From Zygnema circumcarinatum SAG 698-1b (Eukaryota > Plantae > Zygnematophyceae), in the NCBI GenBank assembly GCA_037447605.1, contig CM074813.1:1488001-1552000 (forward strand): a stretch of 64,000 nucleotides of DNA. Direction: 5' to 3'. The translations under genes and the position numbers were made by a program. Shown here one piece after another: positions 10,501 to 30,330 of the stretch. The stretch's first letter is position 1; each line of letters opens with the position of its first letter. Below the pieces are notes generated by a model. It worked only from the letters and a program-made list of their open reading frames with translations. It made no database searches and had not been told where the DNA came from.

Positions 10501-12990
10501 GTCGGTGACGCTCGTGGTTTCGATTTCGCAAGTTCCCGTCGGAACTTCCCTCGCTCGTCGAAAATGGCCGCTCCCGTCGTCTTTGTGGGCTGGCCCATGG
10601 TCGCTGGCTGCACTGCGTGGAGTGCACAGTTGAACTTCGCCATTGTCGCGATAAGCTCCCTAGAGACGATTCGGTCAATCCACGCTTCGCGATTTTAGGC
10701 GGATTCACGAGTTGAGAGTTGATACGCGCTCGAGGAAAGCGGCCCGCGAGACTCCCCCTAGCAGCTTGCCTTAGGTTCAGCCAGCGGATCATTAATTCCG
10801 TTTGCGATTTCCAGTCTAGGTAGTAGAGCCCTCCCATTTGGGTCGACCACGGAGTTTTCTGGTTTTCTATGCACTATTTTGCGGGTATTCTGCTAAATAT
10901 CCCTATCGCTCCATGGTCTGACTAACCGAAAGAAAAGTTATTTCTAAGGGTTGGGGTGTGCAGCTTATTACCAATCGATTTAGGAAAAGGCTGTTCCTTC
11001 ACACGCATGGTGGCAATTTACGGACTTCTCCTCATGATATACTTGGCCCGATCTGGTCTCCGTGGGCGTCACCGCTCGTGACTCATCCAGCATCTGCATG
11101 TGTGAAAATAGAGACTTGTCGCTGCACATGTGCTTAGAATCACCTGAGTCTATAAGCCTAGGCAGATATTCAGATTAGTCAATTTCATTAACTGAAATTT
11201 GATTTACAAATGCTGCGTGCTTTGCTTCACTAGCCGACAGACTCGCGCTCATCTGGGCGGCTACATCTGCCGTGCAGTTCCGCGCCATGTGTCCCGGCTG
11301 TTTGCACTTGTAGCAGATGATCTCCTTGCCTTTGCCTTTGCCGTCCTTCTTGGGTGCGCTCGGGGTCGGTACGTTGCCCTGGGCAGCCTTCTTGGTTCGA
11401 CATTCGGCTTCAAGGTGACCTTTCGTTTACAAAAGTTGCAAGAAATGCGTGCGGTAGCTCCACTGTTCTTACGAGGTCTCGGTCGATCATATGCGTCCTC
11501 GAGGGTGAACCTCTGCCGTCCCTTTGATGGTTAACTCTCCTCGGCTCTCACTTTCGCGTATCACTTCCTCAAGGTAAAGCGTATTTTGACGGTTTTGGGA
11601 GTTGATAGTTGGTGCAAACCGGCTCGGCAAACCTCGGAGGAAGCTCACAATCTGATGATCCTTGACGATAGGCTGCCTAGCGATAACGAATTTCGCCATC
11701 AGTTCGTCAAAGCGTATCACGTATGTGGTCAACTCCTCGGTCTGGGCCATCTTCATTTGCATCAGCTCATCGTAGAGCTCGAATTTGATGGTGATATCGA
11801 TGACGTCGTAGATGTTGGCGAGCTTCTGCCACATTTCGTAGGCGGACGTAAGCTCCCGAAGCATCTTGGCGGGGTTCCCTCTGACGCTTGAGGCGATGAG
11901 CAGCCTCACTTGAGCGTCCTTCATCGTCCACGTTGATAGCTCGTCGGCAGTCATGGGCGAATCCACAGTCGGCGGCTTGACAGTCCCGTTCACGTACTTG
12001 ACCAGGTTCTTGGTCTGCAAAAGGGTCATCATGTGCCACCGCCAGTCCTTGTAGTCAGTTCCTTTGAAGATAGGAATAGTATGCCGAATGTCTCCATCAG
12101 CTCTGATACCACTTGTTGGTAATTCCATGGTGGAACCACCCTCGGCCAGTCGCCTCCACTGACTCTTAATTAAGTGAACATCTTCGGCGAGGCGCTCAAG
12201 ACGGATGCAAGACAAAGAGGCGTCAAGATAGAAGCCCCACGGTGTATAAAACTACGATTTTCTTTGGGTGAAGTACCTTGATTCAAGCAGCCTGGCAGCA
12301 ATGCAGCTTGCACTACCCCACTCTCTTTTTCCCAAGACTGGCAGCACTACTCCTCTTCTTAACTACAGGCTCGGCCTCAACTCGCTACACACCCCCATTG
12401 GCATGTGGTATGAGGTTGCTTACTCTGAGGAATGCTACTCTCTATATACTTCCTACGACTAAGCTACGTGACAGCGTCCTGTGGACCGGCTTGTCACGCC
12501 CGCCCTGAGCGGGTGCATGCAGTCCGCAGCCAGCTGCGCGTTCAGCAGCCAGCTCGTCTGCGGACCCGGTCTCCTCCATAGTTGGCCGCGTCAGAGCCCG
12601 TCGGAAGTAGTGGGTCCGCAGCCAGCTGCGCGTTCAGCAGCCAGCTCGTCTGCGGACCCGGTCTCCTCCATAATTTGGCGTCGAGCCGTCGAGGAAGTAG
12701 CGGTTGGCGCGCCCGTCGGTCACGAACTTAGCGGCTCGCGTAGCGCCCTCTCTGGAATCCGTACATCTCGGGACTTGGCGTCTCGCTGGCGCCCGTAGCG
12801 CTAGGTATGTGACCAGAAAAAGTGTCGTCCGCGCGACATATCGTCGCGTCGCCCCGGGCGCGCCGATACTCCGTTTCGTCATGTCACGGTCCCAGAACTT
12901 ATCGCGTCACATTGGTGTAGCGACCGGCCTGTAATAAACTTCATGTTACGGCGTCAGTTCCATTTATCCTTCGAACTATCATGGCGTTAT
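7580..12990 (-). mobile_element. Opposite-strand copia copy: LTR (~12990-12114), PBS 12100-12111, gag, protease, integrase, RT, RNase H (degenerate)
   Basis: Gag IPIFKGTDYKDWRWHMMTLLQTKNL plus CCHC knuckle CNFCKRKGHLEAEC (~11390-11440); protease IDSGDSKHMC (~11120-11150); ELVHSDICGP (integrase); FKARLVAKGFAQKFGIDY and HQLDIKTAFLYGDL (RT); VALSSTEAEYVAACHAAREAVWL (RNase H). Outer LTR boundary is approximate. Confidence 0.85.
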
Positions 12991-13039
12991 GCGGCCTCTA
13001 GTCATTACAATGAATGCGGCCTCGTGCAATCATCAGTAC

Positions 13040-15042
13040 ATCAGGCTTCAATGTGACGTATGGTACGATCTCCATCTTCTTAAGCCTCCCTCTTGAGGCG
13101 GGGTGACGCATGGATTCGAAGCCTGCGTGACATATCCATGGGACTTGTGCATGGAGTGCACTTGTCCATTCTGAACTTCGCTAGGACATCCTTGGCGTAC
13201 TTCTCTTGGCAAAGGAATAAACTACCATCTCGCCCCCTCTTGTTTGAATTCCCAACGAATGTGGGCTCTCTAAATGTCCACGTCATGCGGAAGGATTCTC
13301 CTTCATCAAATCCTTGAGACTTTGAATGCTTTGCATGGAGGAACTTACAATGATCAGATCGTCCATCAAATGCCACGTATGGCGACTCCTTCCGGTATCT
13401 TTCTTTGTAGGCGGAGTGGTCTGACTCAAACGGCTTGTATCCATTCCTCCGTAAAAGATCATCTATCTTCTGGTACCAAATCCGGGGTGCTTGCTTGAGG
13501 CCGTAAAGACTCTTTACCAGCCTGCATACGAGATGTTCTTGTCCTTCCACCACTGTGCCTTCCGGCTGCTCCATATAAATCTCCTCACTTAGATCTCCAT
13601 AGAGGAATGCAATCTTTATATCAAGTTGATGGACATGCATTCTCTCATTTCGCTGCGATCGAATATTAAGGTGATCTAAAGGGGGTGAACAACCAGCGGT
13701 GCAAAAGTCTCCGAATAATCAATGCCCTCTTTCTGTCTATACCCCTTTGCAACCAGCCTGGCCTTGTAGCGATCTACGCTCCCATCTGCCTTCCGCTTCA
13801 CCTTAAACACCCATTTGCAGCCTATAGCCTTCCTACCCTTAGGAAGCTCCTCCAATCTCCAGGTTCCATTTTCTTTCAAACTATTCAGCTCACTATCTAT
13901 TGCTGCCCTCCACTTTTCAGCATCCTCACCCTGCAAAGCTTCCGCATAACTCTGAGGTTCTGTAATATGAGCCATCATGCACGCAGCAATGCCAGCAAAG
14001 TCAGCTGAGTCACTAGGTGTTCTGACCTTCTTCGTCCTTTTTGCCTTCCAATATGGTGGTTGGTGGTAGTCTGCCAACCAACCAGGTTGCCTCCTTGGAC
14101 GATCACTCCTGTTCTCATAGTTTGGAGTGAATCCTTGCCTCTCTCCTGACTCCTTTGCTAGCTGCACCTGCAAGTCCGCTGATGGCTCCTCCTCCTCGGG
14201 TGCTTCCTCCTCAGCGGTCCCTCCTCAGTCTGAGAATCTGGCGGTTAGTGACATGCTCCATCGGTGGGCTATGCTGAATATCAGGCCGTGGTAATGCTGC
14301 TTCCTCAACCCTTCCTGAATCTTTTGGAACCCATGGAAACACAAGCCTTCTCGTGTTCACGTCCTTCTCTCCATCCAGCTTCTCTGAATACTTGTGGAAT
14401 TCTTGCACAATTATGTCACGACTCCTTTCCACCTTCTTTGTGACTGGGTTCCAGATCCGGTAAGTCTGGCTATCTTCATTGTAGCCAAGGAAGTATCCTT
14501 CCACAGATCGAGGACTGAACTTCTGCGCTTGCTTGTGCTTTGGAACGTGAATAAAGCACTTTGAGCCCCAAACTCGAAAGTGCTCAACAGTCGGCTTCTT
14601 GCCTGTCCACACTTCCTCCGGAACTTTATCCTTCAAGACAGATGTAGGGCACCTGTTCCGAATATACGCTGCCGCCGTGATCGCCTCAGCCCAAAACGAT
14701 AGCGGAAATGGCGACTCATTCAGCATAGTCCTTGCCATATCTCCTAGCGTCCTATTCATCCTCTCAGCAGCTCCGTTACTTTGAGGAGAGTAAGGGGCAG
14801 TGAACTCATGTTTCACTCCGAGGGACTTCAGGTAATCTCTAAACTGGTGAGAAGTGTACTCTCCACCATTGTCTGACCTTAGAGTTTTTAGTTTCATCCC
14901 TGTCTCCCTCTCAGCCTGCAGCTGCCACTCCTTGAAGGCCTGAAAAGCTTCCGATTTCTTGGTGAGCGTTTTCACCCATACTTTCCTTGAGCAATCATCA
15001 AGAAAGGTGATGAAATAGTTAGCTCCACCTTTGCTTGTAGGG
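13040..15042 (-). mobile_element. Copia integrase-RT fragment, relatively intact
   Basis: LKTLRSDNGGEY, FTAPYSPQSNGAAERMNRTL, YKARLVAKGY and HQLDIKIAFLYGDL. Ends at the N gap 15043-15052. Confidence 0.9.
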
Positions 15043-15052
15043 NNNNNNNNNN

Positions 15053-16073
15053 CCGTGATCTACGAAGAAAAGAGGCAAGAGCGCCTCTGCATCGGTGACG
15101 TCCTTCACACCCCTGAGCTGAAACAGAATTTTATGTCTGTTAGCCAAGTATGTAAGAAGGGGTATGAGGTCATGTTCAGGGAGAAGTCATGTGTAGCTAC
15201 TCACCTTGTGACGGGGAAGCAGCTGTTTAAGGGGTTTGAGAAAGGAGGGTTGTATTACCTTCACTATAGGAGAGAAGAAGACGAGGAAGTCATGGCCGTG
15301 GCTGAAGATGCAGTGAATCTCTGGCATCGTAGACTTGGTCACCTCAACCATAGGGGCTTGCAGCAACTGGCAGAAAAGGGGCTGGTCCGTGGGTTGGATG
15401 TTGACGTAGTTGAGAAGGAGCTCGGACTTTGCAAAGAGTGTGTGGAGGGGAAGGCGCGTAGGAGACCGTTTTCGAGGAGTGGAGAAGAGGCGTTCCATGC
15501 GAAGGAGAAGTTGGAGTTAATCCATACCGACCTCTGTGGCCCCGTGACACCGACAACAACAGGAGGAGCCCGTTATTTCATCACCTTCCTCGACGATTTT
15601 TCGAGGAAGATCTGGGTGAAGATTCTCAAGAACAAGTCTGAGGCATTCGGAGCCTTCAGAGATTGGCAGATTCAGATGGAGAGAGAGACTGGACACAAGT
15701 TGAAGACTCTTCGTTCAGATAACGGAGGCNNNNNNNNNNGAGGGCGAGTACATGGGGGCTTGCCATGCAGCGAAGGAGGGAGTGTGGTTTCAACATTTCT
15801 TCGAGGAGTGTAAGAGGCCGCAACTGCCCGTGGCTCTGTTCACGGATAATCAGTCGTCCATTGCCTTGGTGGAAAATCCAGTGTTCCACAAGAGGACCAA
15901 GCACATCAGAGTGCAGTATCACTATGTGCGAGAGTTGGTGGAGGAAGGGATGATCGTTGTGAAGTTTGTTGGAACAAAAGAGCAGGCTGCAGATATGTTG
16001 ACAAAAGGTGTTAGCAGAGAGACCATACTAGTGAATAGCAGGCTTATTGGGATGGGGCCCATGAGAGACTGAG
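15053..16073 (+). mobile_element. Copia GAG-pre-integrase/integrase start and RNase H end
   Basis: GGLYYLHY, LWHRRLGHLN, CKECVEGK, LELIHTDLCGP; after the gap, FTDNQSSIALVENPVFHKRTKHIRVQYHYVRE and QAADMLTKG. Confidence 0.9.
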
Positions 16074-17984: not shown

Positions 17985-18216
17985 CCCCCGATATTTTCGC
18001 CTCTAATTTCGCTACCCAATATTTTCGCCCCTAATTTTGCTACCCAATATTTCCGCCCTGATTTTGCTGAAACCACTTTTTTGTACGGTATGTTCGCCAT
18101 GCTAGCCGTACTATTCGCACTATCCGTACTAGCTTTACTAGCCGTTAGCAAAACTCACCGACTCTTCCCGCACGTGCCGCCGTACGAGGCGCTCGCCCCT
18201 CTCCTTCTTAGCTTCG
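17985..18216. mobile_element. Fragment of the pogo-like MITE family seen at 23-25.7 kb; insertion host of the gypsy element
   Basis: Shares ATATTTTCGCC, GAAACCACTTTTTTGTACGGTA, GCAAAACTCACC and CCCGCACGTGCCGCCGTA.GAGGCGCTCGC with the 23938-24180 copy. Confidence 0.8.
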
Positions 18217-18428
18217 TAGGTGGAGACCTCCAGGGCTTCTACTGTCTGGTTGAAAGTGGCTGAAGTTATAGGCCTGAGGCTCTAGTCTTAAGATCAGAAA
18301 GTCAAGGCACGGCTGGAGTAGGAAAACTGCGTTTGGAGGCATAGCTATTTTGCTGCAAAGTGATTATTGAGGAGGAGAAAGAGGAAGAAAGAAGAAAAGA
18401 AGAAAGAAAGCGACCTTATTCTCCACCG

Positions 18429-21400
18429 ATGGCCACTCGGCCTCAAAGGGAGCGCAAGCCACCTGAGCGCTTTGCTGTTGAAGATTTTCGCGATAAAGTG
18501 GCTGACTTTGAGATTAAACAGGTCTCGAAACTTTCTTTCTTTCATTTTTTTTTTTTTTTGTTTCGAAACTTTGGCTGAGGATACACTTTACCGGAATTCT
18601 GTGTTAACGGGCGTGTTTAGCCTCTGCTAGAAATTTTTATTGTAAACTTTGGCTCCTTCGCTGATTACTCTCTCCGGGATTGAGTCGGGTCTTGCAGGGA
18701 AGGGGAACGGCACTGAAAGATATTCCAAACAGTAGGGCATCGCCAGCACCAGAAAGGCCTTGTTTCAGGCCTTGTTTCTTGCAGTAGCCTTTTAGGGTTA
18801 TCACAGAGTATTTCTGGCTTTTGTTGTAGATGACGTAAGAGACCTTTTAGGTTAGCTATGGTGCTGCTTATTCTTGTAAACTAAATGGAGGGGGAGTTCT
18901 GCACTTCTGTTTGTACAGACAGGAAAATGATCATTGCAGTGGGCTGCTTCTTTTGCAGTTGCGGCTAAGATGGCTAAAAAGGCGAGAAATGATGAACTAA
19001 TCTCAATGTTCCATTCCCTTCTGTACAGCAAACGCGCCAAGGTGAGCTGCTTTAGTGCCTTATGCTTGTCGGAACCGTTAGACTATGCAATTTCACTGCA
19101 CTTCCACGGATTTGCATTGGTCTTGGTTGAGAAATTTGTTCCTGGTATCTGTCGGCTGCAGGTTCACGTGGTGAAAAGGAACATTTTGGAGTTCTCTGGA
19201 TACCCCTGGAAAGAGAACGATGTGAGCTGTTCCTCTTTTCATTCATTTCTGGACTGGAGTTAACAATCTTTCCTGGCTTAGCTAATGTCAATGTTAGTGT
19301 TCGATTATGAGGTCTCTGACAGTGCTGCTTGCGACCTGCTTGCATTATAAATGAAATAGCCTTAAGTGTTTACAGTTTGAGTGCTATGTGCTGCACAGGC
19401 AAAGGAAAAAGCGAAACTGAAGGAAAAACTCGAACGTTATACGAAGGAAGGAATCCAGCAGCTCCTAGAGTTCCTTGATCTTCCCAAGGCTGGCAAAAAG
19501 GTGGGGTTGTATAAATTGTTCAATGTGTTCTGATGAAAGTGCTTCTGTAGTATTGCACAGTGCACTTGCAAGCTGATTGTAAGCTCAATTTGCTGATGCT
19601 TTTCTCTGCTTGTTCGGTGTTTGCAGGAGGAGCAGATTGAGCGTGTGTCTTCTTTCTTGCTGAAGCCGGGGCCCCCGTCAACAACTCCCAAGCGGAAGCG
19701 CGACGATGAAGAAGTAGAAGAGTCCCTTCCGACCAAGAGGTGGAGGCCATCAGAAGAGCCTACGGAGATGGAGGTGGAACCTCTACCAAAGTTGGTAGAT
19801 GCAGAAAAGGTACAACTGAACAGAAACCCTGGAGGGAGGCAGGGAGGGAGGCAGGGAGGGAGGGAGGGAGGGAGGCAGGACGCTATTACGCTGACGCTAT
19901 TATTGTTGTTGTTGTCCCTTTACTTCTGCAGGAAAATCTCTGGAAGGAGGTTCATTTTGTTGGCACTGAGGTAAGGATTTCTTTTTCACTTTTATTGTTT
20001 CCTTTTTGCTTTTGCAATAGTCTGGCTATTAATTACCACTTTTTTTCTTTGTTCTTCTTTTTTACAGTGGGCTGAATACGATAAAATTCTTAAAGAAAAC
20101 TGGGATTTTTCTTCCCTTGAGGTAAATATTCGACGCTCTACTTTAGTTGAATACATTGGTTTGCTCGCCTTATCCAGTTTTTAGTTATTCATTGTACTAA
20201 CCAAGATGCTTCAAAAACTTTTGCAGGAAGCATTCAAACCTGGCGCAGTTCTCCACGGGAGAACCTGTTGGATATTTGGGTCAAGCGAAGGTGAGTTTAA
20301 TTTACAGTTGAAGGATCTACTTTAAGTTGTAACAAATTGCCATGCTCTGTTTTTGTTTGCCTGCCTCCCTCCCTCCCTCCCTCCCTCCCTCCCNNNNNNN
20401 NNNCCTCCCTCCCCTCCCTCCAAAAGTCAATGGTTTTGTTTGTCCGCACTGAAAAGTCAGCATTGAAATTTCTGGATTTGTTAAATGCAGGCCAATTCAA
20501 CTTAGAGTTGTTGAAACCTTTTTCGATCCCGGTGATATTTGCTGTAAGTTGTTGGCCTTTATCTTGCTAAACCTCATCCCTTAGCCCTTAGACCTTTGAT
20601 TCCTTTGTTCTCAAATGCAATCGTAAATGCGGTAGAGGTCATGGACTAATCTGATAAAGACTTGTGTTATGGATGGCAGGTGGTTTCGCCACTGGCCCCG
20701 TCTTACAAGTTCGGGGTGACGTCCGTCACGAGGGGGGAAGAAATTATAAATATGGAAGAAATGCACTTCGGCTGGATACCCTCCAGGTAATAATACTTGC
20801 TAAACTACTACTTGCTTATTTACTTGTTGAATTTACGTGTTCAGTTGTATGTTTATGTGATTGAACACTGCTGGGTATTTCAATTCTATTTTTTTTTTTC
20901 CTTTCTTTGTTTGGCTTACTGTGCAGGAGAAAAGCTGTACAAGGTTCTGAAGCTAAAATTCATGTTTTGAACTGGGAAGGACAGAGGTAAATACGGAAAC
21001 TGTTGTTGCATTTGTCTTGTTGTTTTTCCGTTTTTTTCCAGATTCACGCCTAAATCATGTATTGTCGAGTGAGTTGCTAACACGTACTTCCAAGTGCATT
21101 ATGCAGGGAAAGTTTGAGAAGGATGAAAGAGGAGGATCTTAAAAAGTTTGAATATCTGGTTCCATGTGAGTGTTATTCCTTCCTATTCAACTGTCTTGCA
21201 GGTTCTTGTGCGCTTTCCTGTCTTGATTCTTGAAATCAGCCGCATGTGCGCAGATATTCCTGTTCATTTGGTTGCTGCCAGGTTGGATACTAAACTATTG
21301 GGTGTTCCTTCACAGATGTTTTCAACCCAAATAAAGAAGGGAATCTCCTAATAGCAGACACTGTACTCCAGATTCTGTTTGAATATGGCGAGGGAAAGGC

Positions 21401-22791
21401 ACCGGTGCGTCCTTTGCACTCGATCCGAGGCTCGACATAGAAAACACAATAAGCTTTCATAATGAAGGGATCAAGTGGGGTGAACGTTGAGTCCACCATG
21501 ACTATTAGCCCTATCCTTGCAGGCCAATTGAAATTCAGACAAGGGATGGCTTAAGGGGAGTGTCTTATATCTGATTATATGATTTGGGGTGTGGAGAGCT
21601 GGGTGGGCAGATTGTCACACAGTATGACTGGAAATTTGACGAGAAGGATGTACGTGGCCTTCACTTCGTGACGCCTTGATCTCCAAACGAAAATGCTGCT
21701 TTCAATGTGATCCTAAGTCAACTGTTTATGGTTCGGGCGGTTTCATTCTACTTGCAGGATATTTTGGCCAAGATTTCTGATGAATTTGAACTGCCCGACT
21801 CAGAACGTGACAATTTTTGGGTAAGTCACCAACCTGTGATAGGATTGGCAGTGGAGACGGAAGGCAGGAACTATCGATCAGCCGTTGTCGAGGGAGCAAC
21901 TGACACTCCTCACTGTCATTGTTTCTGGTTTATGTGTTTTAGAATCTTTGGGCACATTTAATTTCCTGATTGGATGTGTGATATTGGCATTGCTTTGAAT
22001 TTATGGGTCAGGCGCACTGCAAAGCGGAAGCGAAAGCGGCAAAGGCCAGGATCAGGGAGGTGAGTTGAGACATAAAACTGTTGTAGGGTTTTTAGGGGCT
22101 TTAGGGGTTTTAGGGTTTTTTTGTCTACTTTTGGAGTTGCTAGAGTCATCAATTAGATGTTTGCATGCTTTTTGGCTCTAAGGAAATCTTGAATAACAAC
22201 CTTTGCGCATTCATTTCGCCAGTCGCCAGTCTTTTTATCAGACGCTTGACCTCTGTTCGCGTTATGTAAGAAGTTGCAGTTCAACTGGAAAGGCTTAGAA
22301 ATGCCAAAAAGTAGAGGATCAAAGTTTATATGAATGTTAATATGAATGTTTGCTTTTTACTAACAAGGAATGTGAGTTTGTTGCATCATGGCAGGAAAAA
22401 GCAAAAATAAAGGAAAAACTTGATTCGATGTCGGAAGCAGAGCGCGAGTCTCTGAAAGTGATGAAAGTTTACAAGATTTATCCAAAGGAAACCCCAGAAG
22501 CGCCAGTAATAGAGAGGGTAAGAGCGTGTTGACTTTCATCCTGATGCCTTGGTAGGAGAGTGATTAACTTGCATTTTGTTTCTTTACTTTAGGTCGCCTA
22601 AGAGGGAAAGTAGCACAATTTGAACGGCGATGTCTTGCCGCCAACCTTAATCTTAACATTTTTTGTTTTTTGTTTTGTTTTTTTGTTTTATGTTGCAGAC
22701 GACATTTGTGAACAGATATTTTGATAGTGCACATGAAGTCTTTCCTGCCGTGCCACCTGCACGTCCATTTTCTTGGGGCATCGGTAAATGA
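18429..22791 (+). CDS. 19-exon chromatin protein: DEK-like N-terminal region fused to a HEAT INTOLERANT 4-like domain
   Basis: Exons read with GT-AG in one frame. DEK-like: MATRPQRERKPPERF, GRGTALKDIPNI, VKRNILEFSGYPW, EKAKLKEKLERYTKEGIQQLLEFLDLP. Linker PKRKR. HIT4-like: ENLWKEVHFVGTEWAEYD, NWDFSSLEEAF, FGSSE, KFGVTSV, MKEEDLKKFEYLVPY, YDWKFDE, MKVYKIYPKETP, FVNRYFDSAHEVF. TGA at 22789-22791. An upstream exon cannot be excluded. Confidence 0.85.
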
Positions 22792-23376
22792 TAGGTTAAA
22801 CGTGAACTCCAGCAAAGACAACAACACAACTTGTACAAAAGTAGTGCACATTTTTTGTTAGGCGTAGGTTTCCGCTCTTAGCTTCGTTCTATTGTGCTTA
22901 GGTCCTTTGCGACCAGTCCCTAGTGGTCCCACATCATGCTTTTGTCCATGTACATTTGATGGCCTCGCCATCGCGAGTTCAATGAAATTCCCCCGTGTCA
23001 CCTATACAGTGTATAATACCGTGTACGGTACAGTAGACCCCCCTAATATTTTCGCCATGGTTTCGGCAAATATGGGGCGAAAATCTTGGAATTTGCAAAT
23101 ATAAGGTTCGTGTTACCAATAGGCGGGCGGTATTATGTTAGAGACTTAACAGTTCATCCTCGTTTGTACGTATCGTACCGTACCATATGGTACCGTAACG
23201 TATCATGCCGTATCGTATCGTATCGTATTATATCGTATCGAAACCAAGAAGATGGGGGAGAGGAGCGAGCGCCTCTTACGGCGGCCCGTGCGGGAAGATT
23301 CGGTGAGTTTTGCTTAAGCCCGTAACGGCTAGTACAGCAAGTACGAATAGTACGAATAGTACGGCTAGTACGAGTA

Positions 23377-23935
23377 CAGTAGGGGGTCCTCATATTTTCC
23401 ACCCTGGTTACGGGCAAAATGAGGCGAAAATATTAAATTTGCATATATAAGGTTCGTGTTACGAATAGACGGGCGGTATTATGTTAGAGTTCATGTTGAA
23501 CCGTACGTATCGTACCGTACCATATCGTACCGTATCGTACTGTATCATTTAGCATCGTATCGTATCGTGACATATCGTGACGCATAGACGTAGTTTTCCG
23601 CTTTCTGTTGTTCGTCTCAGCTCGTACATCTCGTACGGACAATACCATATCGGGGCGTTTCGTATCGTATCGCCTAGTATCGTAAAGTATCGTACCGATC
23701 GTTCCGTATCGTATCGTATCGAAGCCAGGAAGAAGGGGAGAAGAGCGAGCGCCTCTTACGGCGGCACGAGCGGGGAGATTAGGTGAGTTTTGCGGAAGCC
23801 CGTAACGGCTAGTACGAACAGTACGAATAGTACGGCTAACACAAGTTACCGTACAAAAAGGTGGTTTCGGCAAAATCGGGGCGAAAATATTGAGGACGCA
23901 CTCCTTGGGGTGGTAAATACGAGGACCCCCCACTG
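23377..23935. mobile_element. Pogo/Tc1-mariner-like MITE B
   Basis: Left TIR CAGTAGGGGGTCCTCATATTTTCCACCC; right TIR (rc) CAGTGGGGGGTCCTCGTATTTACCACCC; TA on both sides; internal (GTATC)n tracts; no ORF. Confidence 0.85.
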
Positions 23936-23937
23936 TA

Positions 23938-25625
23938 CAGTAGGACCCCGTCATATTTTCCACCTTCAAAAGTGCGTCCCCAAGAAATTCGCCCCGATTT
24001 TGCCGAAACCACCTTTTTGTACGGTAACTTTGTGTTAGCCGTACTATTAGTACTGTCCGTATTGTCCGTACTAGCGGTAATAGCTGTACTAGCCGTTACG
24101 GGCTTACGCAAAACTCACCTAATCTCCCCGCACGTGCCGCCGTAAGAGGCGCTCGCTCTTCTCCCTCTTCTTCTGAGCTTCGATACGATACGATACGATG
24201 CGGTACGATACGGTACGATACAAAACCCCCGATACGGTACTATTCGTACTAGCCGTACGAGCTGTACTAGCTGTACTAGCCGTTACGGGCTTTGTAGCAC
24301 AAGATAAGTGGGGTTAAAAGGAGATTGCTGAGCTAGTTGCAGGTGCTGTACGGCCACTCGCGCGTCCGTGCTGAAACTGATGAAGGGTTGGGTTGGTGCT
24401 GTGGGTCTGCCTGCAGCATAGAGCCAGGATCCGGGGGATTCAGAGGTACGCGCAGCGGAAGACGTAGGGATCCTGAAGATGTTCCCACCGGCGGCTGGAC
24501 TCGATGCGCAAAGAGCCCTTCCTTGGGGGCTCTCTTCCCCTGTCCTCTCCTCGGCTAGTCTCTTAGCTAGGCTTCTAGTTATCATTGGTCATTGGGAGGA
24601 ATGTAAGGCAGGATAGAACAAGATGGTAGCTTGGCATAGTGACAGCAAAGGGAAAACAGGACTCAACTTAGATAAAGGTTGTATTTTGGAAAGTCACCCC
24701 AGCCAGCGGTTGGCTGGGGATAGTCATTACAATGAAAGGATCTTCTCACTGAAATCTTTGTCTAGCTGGGCTGAATGGGACGTCTAAATGCTATCAGCAA
24801 GAAGACTCTTTCTCTCTCTCTCTCTCTCTCTCTATCTATGGCATGGAACTCTCTCTCTCTCTCACACTTAGCATCTGTTGCTGGAACTGAAGAGGAAGAA
24901 GAGAAGAACAAGACAACAGACCACACAGCAAATACAAATACTAAGCCCAGCACTAAAAGACAAACTAGCATCACTGACATCCCATCTACTTAGCGCTGAC
25001 AATAGATCTTGAGCCTTAGCAGTGACAGTCCCTGATTGGCCAACTGCCCACTGAGTGGCCTGACTGACTGCGTGGAGCCTTCGGATTGGTCAACTGATGA
25101 CAATCGGCGGCATGTTGCGGCGCTTCCGAGTGCGCCTAGTTGGATGGTGTGCTGTTCCGTGGGCCGCCAACACATGGCGCCGCCTTCTCGCATTTTCCGT
25201 CGGCAATTCCTGGATCAGGCCGGTCCGTGACACTGAATAGGAATATGGCAAGTACAACTGAACGGACGCGGATCCGTCGAACGCAGCTCCGTTACGCTAC
25301 AGCTTACGCAAAACTCACCTAATAATCTCCCCGCACGTGCCGCCGTAAGAGGCGCTCGCTCTTCTCCCCTTCTTCTTGGCTTCGATACGATACGGTACGA
25401 TACGGAACTCTCCGATACTGTATTAGCCGCACTAGCCGTACGAGCTGTAGTAGCCGTCACAGTACGATACGGTACGATATGGTACGGTGCGATACGTACG
25501 GTCAAACATGAACTCTAACAGAATACCGCCCGTCTATTGGTAACACCAACCTTATATATGCAAAATCAATATTTTCGCCTCACATTGGCCAAAACCAGGG
25601 TGGAAAATATGAGGTCTGTTTACTG
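23938..25625. mobile_element. Pogo/Tc1-mariner-like MITE C (inverted relative to B), split by a solo LTR
   Basis: CAGTAGGACCCCGTCATATTTTCCACC ... rc CAGTAAACAGACCTCATATTTTCCACCC; shares the TA at 23936-23937 with B; TA at 25626-25627. Confidence 0.8.
24293..25301 (-). mobile_element. Gypsy solo LTR (1009 bp) with 4-bp TSD GCTT
   Basis: TGTAGC/GCTACA inverted termini; GCTT at 24289-24292 and 25302-25305; the empty-site sequence TTACGGGCTTACGCAAAAC is present at 24096-24114. Confidence 0.92.
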
Positions 25626-26297
25626 TACAGTAGTACGAATAGTACGACTAACACAGAGTTACCGTACAAAAAGGTGGTTTCGGCAAAATCGGGGCGAATT
25701 TCTTGGGAGCGCACTGTACAGGGTGGAAAATATGAGGACTGCTGACTGTACAGGGTAGTCGCGTTATAGTGAGCATGTCGGTCCCCATATACAGTCTAAT
25801 CACGTTATAGTGACTGTGTCGGTCCCCACATGTTTGTGTCACTATATCTGTAATGACCCGTTTGTCATTTCACATTTATAGTAACAATGTTATTGACAAT
25901 GTTGTTGTTGTTGTTGTTGTGTGGAGTCAGACCTTGAACTGACCTTGAACTGTTGTTAGGCGGTGTAAATAGTACTCGCCATCATCATTTGTCCCGTCAC
26001 GCAGTTTTTCGCCCTCCGTTGACCGACACGGACTGGGGTCGTCGGAGGGGCCTCCGCTCGCAGACTGGCGACCCATCGACCCATAGTGCGACACGACCCC
26101 ATAGTGCGACTCGTAAGCAGCGTGCGACGCTTATGCGAGTCGCACTACCGTACGAGAATCGCGTCGCACGAAGCTCCCGACATGCGACACAAATTTCGCA
26201 GGCTCGCGTCTGAACTAGGGATGGCGAAAAAGTCCGTACAAGGGACTTTATAGAGTTTCATACAGTATTTCAGACATAGAACGCTCTAATATCTAAT

Positions 26298-26957: not shown

Positions 26958-29900
26958 TTACACGTCCCATCGAATAATGGCCCTGTCTGGCAGGCCTGCC
27001 TCTTTCAACAGTTCCGTCACTCCATCGTTTGACTCTTTGCTCCCGAACAAGATCGCCCCAGTTGTTTCAGGGTCGTACTCTAAGTCGTCCTCATCAAAGA
27101 GCTCCGTGAATGAGCCCACAAAGCCCTCCCAGCTCTGTCCAGAAGTGGAGTCCACTGTGGGACGGACCTTCACCTTCCGTGCCTCCCAAGTTGAAAATAA
27201 GCTCTGCAAAAAAAAAAGCCCCAAACATTAGGTATTCTTCTTCACCGGAGCCTCTCCTTAACAGGTGTAGGAAGCAATACACAAAGTCACTAGCCTCGCT
27301 TCACAATCCTTAATCAAACATTTCAGTAGGACGGGTTCCCAGCAGCTCGAAATGCTACTGCGAGTCCTGAAATGATGCCTTCTTGATTGATCCAAAAAGG
27401 TGATTTCATTTGCACCTTACTGCATGTTCATACGCAAGCTGCAACAATCAGTGCATCAAGATAGTCTTTCATTATACTTGTCCGATTGAAGTATTTTCCA
27501 AAATAGGTGTTCAGCCCAACTGGAAATGACGATTTCTCAATTGCCGAGCATTCGAAGAGAAAAAGAAATCTCCATTTTCCTTTCCTCTATTTAGCCTGGT
27601 GCATGGGGAAAAGCAGGGAAGACTGGAACGGATAGAACCGGCTCTTATTACCCCTTCCCCTGGAGATTGGCCACTGAACTCCTCCCATCAGTTTCTTTAT
27701 TCATACCAAATTCAGTAAAATGGCTTACCGTATAGGCGACGTCTGCTGGAGAAGCTGCTGAGTAGTAGAACCGCACTTCCTCCCTCATATTCAAGAATAG
27801 GCTTCCCACGTCATTAGCTTCGATGAGAGCACGAGCAGGTGCTATCCCATCTCCTCGGGCAAAGATGAGGACTATTGGATAGCGAGCCAGAAACATTATA
27901 GGCCTCAAATCGACCCCCGCCTGGAATGGTCCTATTTCTATCACCTCACCTGCAAAACAATAAAAGAAGAAACGAAGAAGTTCAGGATAAAAAGAAAATC
28001 CCTGGTCACACAGTCGAGCAAACGACGACACAACGACTCAAGTAGATGAGGCACTGCTTGTCTCATTTGACGACTGTATATCTGCGAACCAAGAAGGAAG
28101 AACACAATATGTTTTTGTTTCGTAGTTCATTAACACAAACCTCAGCCATAAGTTCAGATATGGAAAATGGGAAAATTATCCATGAACTTCCTAAGACCTT
28201 TCATAATACCCTCATAAAGTAGAATCACCGTGTCAAGCCTACACAGGATATAATAGAGAGAACGTTGAACTTGAAATGATGCCAGACAAGAGTGACACCA
28301 CCAGCCCTTAAGGTCCATCATAACTTTGCATGGAAATATCCAAAAACATGCACGCACTCCTCATCCCAAGTTCATGAATTGAACTGCATAAAGAGAAAAG
28401 TTCCTGCTATGTTGTTCTTACCGACGTCACACGAAAAACGTCCGGCATCACTAAAGACTGACTAAAAACTGAGTGATTTTATTGCCGAAATTGCAGAAAA
28501 GCTAGACATTCACCAAACTTAGAAACCTCTAAAAAGGAAGAGTGATCACTATGCCTATCCTTTTCGACTTGTTTACTGCCAGAAGGATGTATAATCACGA
28601 GAAAATCACGAGGCAGCAAGAAAAATGACCGTACCTGGCTGTACATTAAACAGGCCAGAAGTTCCACTGACGTGAAGATCCAAAGGGGCTTTGACAGAGA
28701 CACCATATTGTGCCAGTTTAGTCGATCCCGCTGGAATATCTCCTCGTAATTTGAGCAGGACAGCATGGTTCGATTCTGAAGGAAAGGGTGGACTTGAGAC
28801 AGGAACCACCACAACGTCACCGCCTGACAGCCTGACTTCAACCTTCTGACCGGGAGTTGTATATGCCTTTGAGAGCTCCACAAACTGCAGCAGACATTCC
28901 GAAACCGCCATACATTGGAACTTAGATGTCGTTGAAGTTTGAAAACAAACATCCACAATGCCAAATGCCATATGCCCAGCACCTCACTGTTGGAAGTTAA
29001 GCAGGAAATCGACAAACAGTACGATTCCTTGGAAAATAGAGACACAAGCAACATGAGACAAAAGGGCCTCGACATCAACTAACTACATCCGTTTTTCAGC
29101 TGTTCACAAAATCTCCAGATTGAAGACGACTTGCTCTACGCACTTAGTTTGAGGTGACAGACAAGATGAAAATGTCCATAATGCTGCTAAACTCCAAAAT
29201 ATGACACCAAACCAATGTCCTTTCAATCACCCACGTCAGAACCACAATTCCATGCTAATTGGAGCTTCATTCTTGACCTGCACATTAAAAATATCTTCCA
29301 CTTGTCTAAACAACTCCGAAACTGCTGAAAGACTTGGCGTATTAAATCTCTTCACTATTTAGAAACAAACTGAAATCAATCACGCAGCACGAACCCAATC
29401 CGAAGGGAAACCCCAGGGGGAGAATAATGAGAAAAGACAAAGCGACACTCAGATGACCATACGAATACATAAGAAAATACTATGAAACCACTGGTGCATG
29501 AAGCTTCCATGACAACAAGTGGTGCTCCTCCGAATGCGAAGGAGACTTTCAAATCGAAGGAAACTTCACAAGGTTCTAACCCGAGAATGCGAAGAGCATG
29601 CAAACAGACTGCATGGAAAATAGAGAGACAAGGTAGAAGGTGAAAGGGGATAAAGAAACAAACCTCGCGAGAAATCTCGGCATCGACAGTGATGCATCGA
29701 ACCCCTTGAGCGACATCCCTTACTGCTAAGACCTCAGCAGCACTATATTCTCGCTTTGGCGCAGATTCCACCTCCTCTAATCTAAAGGCCTTAGTTGACG
29801 CACTGTCTTCAGCTGCCTGCTTCCTATCTTCTGTAGAGACGGAAGGTGTGGCTGTGCTAACGGCACAGAGAACGCCTGCATTCCTCCTTGAGACTCGGAT

Positions 29901-30059
29901 GCAAGTCTTCGTACTCGTCGCTTCAAATGATTGTGATTGACCGGTCCAAGGTGTCGACAGAGAAGGAGAAGCGAAGAGCTTCTTGCATGTAACTTCCGTA
30001 CTTGTTTTTGCAGAACTTATTGCCAAATTTGCTACAGCCTGGAAAGAAGTCGTAGCCAT
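26958..30059 (-). CDS. Plastid-targeted FNR-like FAD/NAD(P)-binding oxidoreductase (pKIWI502/At1g15140-like), 4 exons
   Basis: Ser/Thr/Ala-rich transit peptide. Exons 30059-29664, ~28883-28635 (YTTPGQKVEVR), ~27950-27730 (VLIFARGDGIAPARALIE, VRFYYSA) and ~27210-26958 (WEGFVGSF, YDPETTGAILFG). Confidence 0.75.
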
Positions 30060-30330
30060 GTCTAGCCGAATAAAGCAGCAATATGGTGCAGCAACGAATC
30101 AATGCTGAACGAGCGACCAGTCCCTGTAAGGACAGAGCCCCCTGCAGCAGACAAGCCAACGCCTTTCCCTTCACTTGAATACCTAAACTCAGTCAATACT
30201 CCAACCCTTGCTCTTAGCCTCATGCACCTTTTGCACCTCCTGCAGGGCGAGACTGAGAGGTTAGGGGGAGGCGACAGAGGGGAGAGAGGGGAGAGAGAGA
30301 GGGAGGGGACTAGCGGAGAGTTTCAATGCT

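Follow-up and report, generated by a model that had tools for sequence, protein, structure and literature searches.

A putative DEK–HIT4 fusion gene in the alga Zygnema circumcarinatum

A 19-exon gene with one open frame

We analysed a 64,000-nucleotide (nt) stretch of the Zygnema circumcarinatum SAG 698-1b genome, here called the window (GenBank assembly GCA_037447605.1, contig CM074813.1, positions 1,488,001 to 1,552,000 of the forward strand; coordinates below count from its first base). At 18429–22791, on the plus strand, lies a gene that probably encodes a single protein in which a DEK-type chromatin-binding core is joined to a HIT4-type region. Its exon table, drawn up from the sequence of 18000–23200 and a listing of the open stretches in all three forward frames and checked by script, comprises 19 exons that together give 1,446 nt: 481 codons and a terminator. 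The spliced frame starts with the ATG at 18429 and closes with the TGA (22789–22791) without an internal stop, and an in-frame TAG lies 5′ of the ATG at 18342–18344. All 18 introns follow the GT...AG rule and measure 97–335 nt; the pyrimidine tract is clear before most acceptors and weakest before exon 15. Exons 1–6 supply 185 amino acids (aa) of the product and exons 7–19 the remaining 296.

The N-terminal half opens with exon 1 (18429–18521; 31 aa), which holds the start codon and a basic RERKPPERF motif, followed by exon 2 (18698–18731; 34 nt), which encodes GRGTALKDIPN, ends in phase 1 and is followed by the donor GTAGGG. Exon 3 (18959–19041; 83 nt) is helix-like and contains FHSLLYS, and exon 4 (19162–19221; 20 aa) contains NILEFSGYPW. 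A stretch rich in lysine and glutamate in exon 5 (19399–19500; 34 aa) leads into what would be the opening helix–turn segment (LLEFLDLPKAGKK) of a SAP motif, which the first 14 or so residues of exon 6 (19627–19809; 61 aa, ending in phase 0) would complete. The remainder of exon 6 passes from a proline-, lysine- and arginine-rich segment to an acidic linker, with a KRKR resembling a nuclear localization signal (NLS). The DEK-like motif strings on which the original prediction was built were all found on the plus strand in exons 1–6, at the places it had given for them.

The C-terminal, HIT4-like half opens in phase 0 with exon 7 (19932–19970; 13 aa, ENLWKEVHFVGTE) and continues, on the same strand, through exon 8 (20068–20121; 18 aa) and exon 9 (20227–20290; 64 nt), which ends in phase 1 and leaves a split codon that exon 10 (20491–20543; 53 nt) fills. 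The earliest in-frame methionine of this half is in exon 11 (20680–20786; 107 nt). Exon 12 (20927–20986; 60 nt) terminates in LNWEGQ, exon 13 (21107–21165; 59 nt) encodes RMKEEDLKKFEY and exon 14 spans 89 nt (21316–21404). For exon 15 (21611–21649; 13 aa), the one with the weak pyrimidine tract, an alternative in-frame AG lies 12 nt upstream. Then follow exon 16 (21758–21820; 21 aa), the alanine- and lysine-rich and probably helical exon 17 (22012–22059; 16 aa), exon 18 (22395–22517; 41 aa), in which a helix-like stretch of lysine and glutamate precedes MKVYKIYP, and exon 19 (22699–22791; 30 aa and the TGA), which ends in the tail FVNRYFDSAHEVF.

The junction between the two halves

The two halves meet across intron 6 (19810–19931, plus strand; 122 nt), which has the donor GTACAA, a branch-like CTGAC site and a strong pyrimidine tract ahead of its CAG acceptor, and whose length falls inside the gene's own intron range. 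A 49-nt microsatellite, (GGAGGGAGGCAG)4, occupies 19831–19879 within it. It had been proposed that both the end of exon 6 and the start of exon 7 are in phase 0 and that no stop separates them; the exon table agrees on the phases, and the spliced frame is open across all 481 codons. Neither half is complete alone, because the N-terminal half has no end and the C-terminal half no start, and the two fit one another in strand and phase. Judged from the sequence, the locus is far more likely to be a single gene than a pair.

Words sampled from 18300–22900 were present, at a share of 0.29–0.38, in seven runs from five studies of one organism. From the exon table, all exons with their untranslated regions would be expected to account for a share of about 0.24, with 0.11 from the first half and 0.13 from the second. 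Both halves seem to be represented in these apparent transcript assemblies, whose run type is unrecorded; a word share of this kind does not demonstrate the joint itself.

The best-surviving alternative is that the locus comprises two transcription units, or yields mainly separate isoforms, with the continuous frame used rarely or never. Exons 1–6 would then give a short DEK-like SAP protein by way of a retained intron or another alternative 3′ end, and the HIT4-like protein would arise from an internal promoter. Retention of intron 6 would indeed extend exon 6 by 54 unrelated codons before reaching a stop, and HIT4 stands alone as a protein in Arabidopsis and cotton. However, 122 nt leaves no space for both a 3′ end and a promoter. 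No AATAAA was found in the 122 nt of the intron, and the exon-7 frame, although open throughout it, contains no ATG, so that a separate HIT4 product would start at the exon 11 methionine and be short of some 85 conserved-region residues. An ordinary intron would account for the strong acceptor and for the phase 0/0 match. We regard two units as unlikely.

Identity of the N-terminal half

Homologues were sought with single exons or stop-free exon-bearing stretches as queries, the longest exon being 61 aa. Across 20 exons and exon-bearing open stretches, the sole relevant Pfam family was SAP (PF02037), matched by exon 5 as a single-exon query with an expectation value (E) of 0.0075 and 16.3 bits, under the cut-off of 23.9. 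The alignment covers profile positions 2–25 of 37 and is ended by the exon boundary; exon 6 would open with the remainder of the motif. Exon 6 itself had no Pfam family and only chance-level matches in the PDB. In phmmer searches of the PDB with exons 1, 3+4, 4, 5 and 6, all matches were at chance level and no DEK chain was found at E ≤ 10 with these queries of only 20–61 residues; the pseudo-SAP region of DEK has no Pfam model.

The order of motifs in this half appears to be like that of human DEK and Arabidopsis DEK1–4: a basic RERK..ER, G.G..LKDIPN, a helix with ..LH/FHSLLY, NIL.FSG(Y/F), a stretch rich in lysine and glutamate, and a SAP box that ends in ..FL.KP. In DEK these motifs presumably occupy the central pseudo-SAP/SAP DNA-binding core, a location for which the exon 5 match provides weak backing at the SAP position. 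Over a length of some 130 residues, we take exons 1–6 to be collinear with this core as it occurs in human DEK and in DEK3 of Arabidopsis. DEK3 is itself cited in a review as a DEK-domain chromatin protein that works with topoisomerase. The algal protein also differs from DEK. DEK proteins have a DEK_C domain (PF08766), whereas no match to this family was found at E ≤ 10 in the 20 stretches, a set that extended to the final exons and into the 3′ flanking sequence, bearing out the earlier claim that the DEK C-terminal domain is lacking. In addition, the algal protein is without the long acidic N- and C-terminal regions of DEK; it starts at the core and runs into an unrelated segment of about 296 aa.

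Identity of the C-terminal half

No exon of the HIT4-like half matched a Pfam family. Its likeness to HIT4 (At5g10010, UniProt A2RVJ8, in Arabidopsis) would lie in the order of common motifs: W.EV.F.GTEW, FGS.E, VVSP..PS and WEGQRR..L.RMKEED.KKF.Y, then DW.FDE, a helix rich in lysine and glutamate, MK.YK.YP and, at the end, F.NRY....HEV. We take exons 7–19 to be collinear with angiosperm HIT4 over about 290 residues, as far as the C-terminal end and including the part that spans an assembly gap in intron 9. At 296 aa, the algal half is near the size of the conserved body of HIT4.

The HIT4 proteins of cotton, with 334–351 aa (PMC10970331), are not far from the algal half in length, and Arabidopsis HIT4 has 434 aa (PMC13214078). 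In both plants HIT4 stands alone, and the papers mention no DNA-binding domain in it, whereas in the alga a SAP-type core replaces the N-terminal region. HIT4 is required in Arabidopsis for heat-induced decondensation of chromocentres and for the release of silencing, and it is located at chromocentres and relocates on heat (reviews, including PMC4408840).

The wider searches used the same kinds of short query. Exon 11 had a single match in the representative protein search, a spurious repeat protein (P0001), which we rejected. Word searches with the exon 6 stretch, the exon 3/4 read-through stretch and the exon 18 stretch gave no homologous protein, within a length window that excludes full-length kin. 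In metagenome contigs, the exon 13 and exon 18 stretches gave pattern matches, none of which was confirmed, and the Protein Atlas gave no usable match to exons 11 and 5. A search of the literature by peptide words returned no match, and full-text searches returned no text that links DEK and HIT4 within one protein.

The terms DEK-like and HIT4-like are interpretations rather than observations. The original interpretation, DEK plus HIT4, stands in part: one open frame does run from a SAP-containing half into the C-terminal half, and the family names have been only weakly tested, with the SAP match below threshold. The gene might accordingly be real and its names overstated, the N-terminal half being a generic SAP-motif nuclear protein or the C-terminal half not a true HIT4 orthologue. 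No search result names DEK or HIT4, the sole match is the sub-threshold SAP, DEK_C is absent from the scans and the PDB yielded no DEK match with its short queries, all of which favour this view. However, queries of 13–61 aa are too short for a fair test, and the order and spacing of motifs seem to track DEK for about 130 residues, beyond the SAP box itself, and HIT4 for about 290. Overstated names seem to us a rather unlikely explanation.

Genomic surroundings

Repeats adjoin both ends of the gene. A dispersed repeat present at 17987–18260 and 23000–25800 forms copies of about 350–480 nt in both orientations, many of its arms being 82–94% alike, and occupies the 3 kb downstream. Directly upstream of the 5′ end, inspection by eye shows related repeat pieces with an CCGCACGTGCCGCCGTA core and a 28-nt tandem array. 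Within the gene, intron 17 holds a telomere-like tandem repeat, (GTTTTAGGG) × 4.6, at 22080–22120. Farther upstream, a Ty1/copia region spans 11490–16070, with Pfam matches on the minus strand to gag (11490–12215), RVT_2 reverse transcriptase (13083–13640) and integrase (14214–14975); a plus-strand open reading frame at 15031–15813 contains runs of N. A search for recorded contigs that encode one of the neighbouring copia reading frames, aimed at the public annotation of the locus, returned none. Downstream, on the minus strand, a neighbouring gene with several exons is represented by open stretches at 27600–30060, the first of which (29379–30059) begins with a transit-peptide-like N terminus rich in serine, threonine and alanine. 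Three pieces of this neighbour matched no Pfam family at E ≤ 0.001. A local tblastn search for a second copy of the fusion gene within the window found none, and RNA genes in its introns were discounted, there being no Rfam match at the gathering score.

This setting raises the question of a decaying or transposon-carried duplicate without function, lying between copia fragments and the dense dispersed repeat. The repeats at both gene ends and the copia pieces upstream are as such a duplicate would have them; against it, 481 codons are open, 18 of 18 introns are canonical, and runs from several studies contain the exon share of the gene's words. We consider such a duplicate very improbable.

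An assembly gap in intron 9

Ten Ns at 20394–20403 mark an assembly gap inside intron 9 (20291–20490), within a CCTC microsatellite, 103 nt past the exon 9 donor and 87 nt ahead of the exon 10 acceptor. Because repeat sequence directly abuts the Ns on both sides, with (CCTC)8.5 at 20360–20393 and (CCTCCCTCC)2 at 20404–20421, the gap would be an unresolved microsatellite. The frame is kept over it, since exon 9 leaves one base and exon 10 supplies two, and spacing across this point is presumably normal relative to angiosperm HIT4. An additional exon with a length that is a multiple of three might conceivably be hidden in the gap. The gap has no bearing on the fusion, because the exon 6/7 junction is over 460 nt upstream of it, in continuous sequence.

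Least probable of the alternatives is an assembly artefact, either a joining of two loci at the GGAG microsatellite of intron 6 or a loss at the N gap: there is a microsatellite in intron 6, and the gap sits in a complementary one in intron 9, but the intron 6 repeat, at 49 nt, is below ordinary read length, the halves agree in strand and phase and each needs the other's start or stop, and the HIT4-like half lies on both sides of the gap with its frame kept.

The complementary microsatellites, (GGAG)n in intron 6 (19831–19879) and (CCTC)n in intron 9 (20360–20421), bracket exons 7–9, whose combined length of 157 nt is not divisible by three. The predicted GGAG/CCTC RNA duplex has an energy of −84 kcal/mol, compared with −65 ± 4 kcal/mol for shuffled sequences. 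In this model, pairing of the two repeats could loop exons 7–9 out of the pre-mRNA and lead to exon skipping or a circular RNA.

A probable fusion of a DEK-type core to a HIT4-type region

We favour the interpretation that the locus is probably a genuine fusion gene. It would encode one protein of about 481 aa with an N-terminal DEK-type DNA- and chromatin-binding core, made up of the pseudo-SAP region and the SAP box and lacking the DEK C-terminal domain, and a C-terminal HIT4-type region of about 296 aa, the two connected by the basic-then-acidic, NLS-like stretch. Several observations count against this interpretation. The SAP match of exon 5 is sub-threshold for Pfam, and protein, metagenome, Atlas and PDB searches with single-exon queries yielded no relative of either half. 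None of the seven word-sharing runs is recorded as RNA. The two halves differ somewhat in G+C content at third codon positions (0.535 versus 0.448), and the 49-nt microsatellite in intron 6 is a conceivable site of a mis-join. With these points taken into account, the complete explanation, a single gene for a DEK core and a HIT4-type region, remains in our estimation the probable one, held with reasonable rather than strong confidence.

In such a protein, the SAP core would anchor the polypeptide on DNA or nucleosomes. The KRKR and acidic linker of exon 6 may serve in nuclear import and as a flexible tether, and the HIT4-like body would then exert, at the anchored site, the activity that HIT4 has in Arabidopsis.

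In a Rosetta-stone fusion, one lineage encodes as a single polypeptide what another keeps as two proteins, and the two are commonly expected to be linked in function or by physical contact. As in such pairs, the two proteins would be joined as one polypeptide in the alga. If the Rosetta-stone reading is true, HIT4 of flowering plants would work on chromatin alongside a DEK protein. We put forward only tentatively that the alga makes a single DEK–HIT4 polypeptide of a kind undescribed in print, which would imply that HIT4 reaches heterochromatin through DEK in land plants. Equally speculative, and offered jointly with that proposal, are the notions that the fusion was either ancestral and later split or else joined in this lineage, which bears also on the original suggestion of an ancestral or lineage-specific heterochromatin remodeller, and that the GGAG/CCTC microsatellites around exons 7–9 might alter splicing of the fusion.

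A review describes the component that couples HIT4 to large-scale chromatin reorganization as unidentified (PMC4408840). Should the DEK–HIT4 architecture prove common in streptophyte algae and bryophytes, its recognition here would be useful annotation rather than a discovery. If the fusion is true, interaction or co-recruitment of DEK and HIT4 would be a candidate for the missing link between HIT4 and chromatin, and the alga would offer a simpler system in which to study it.

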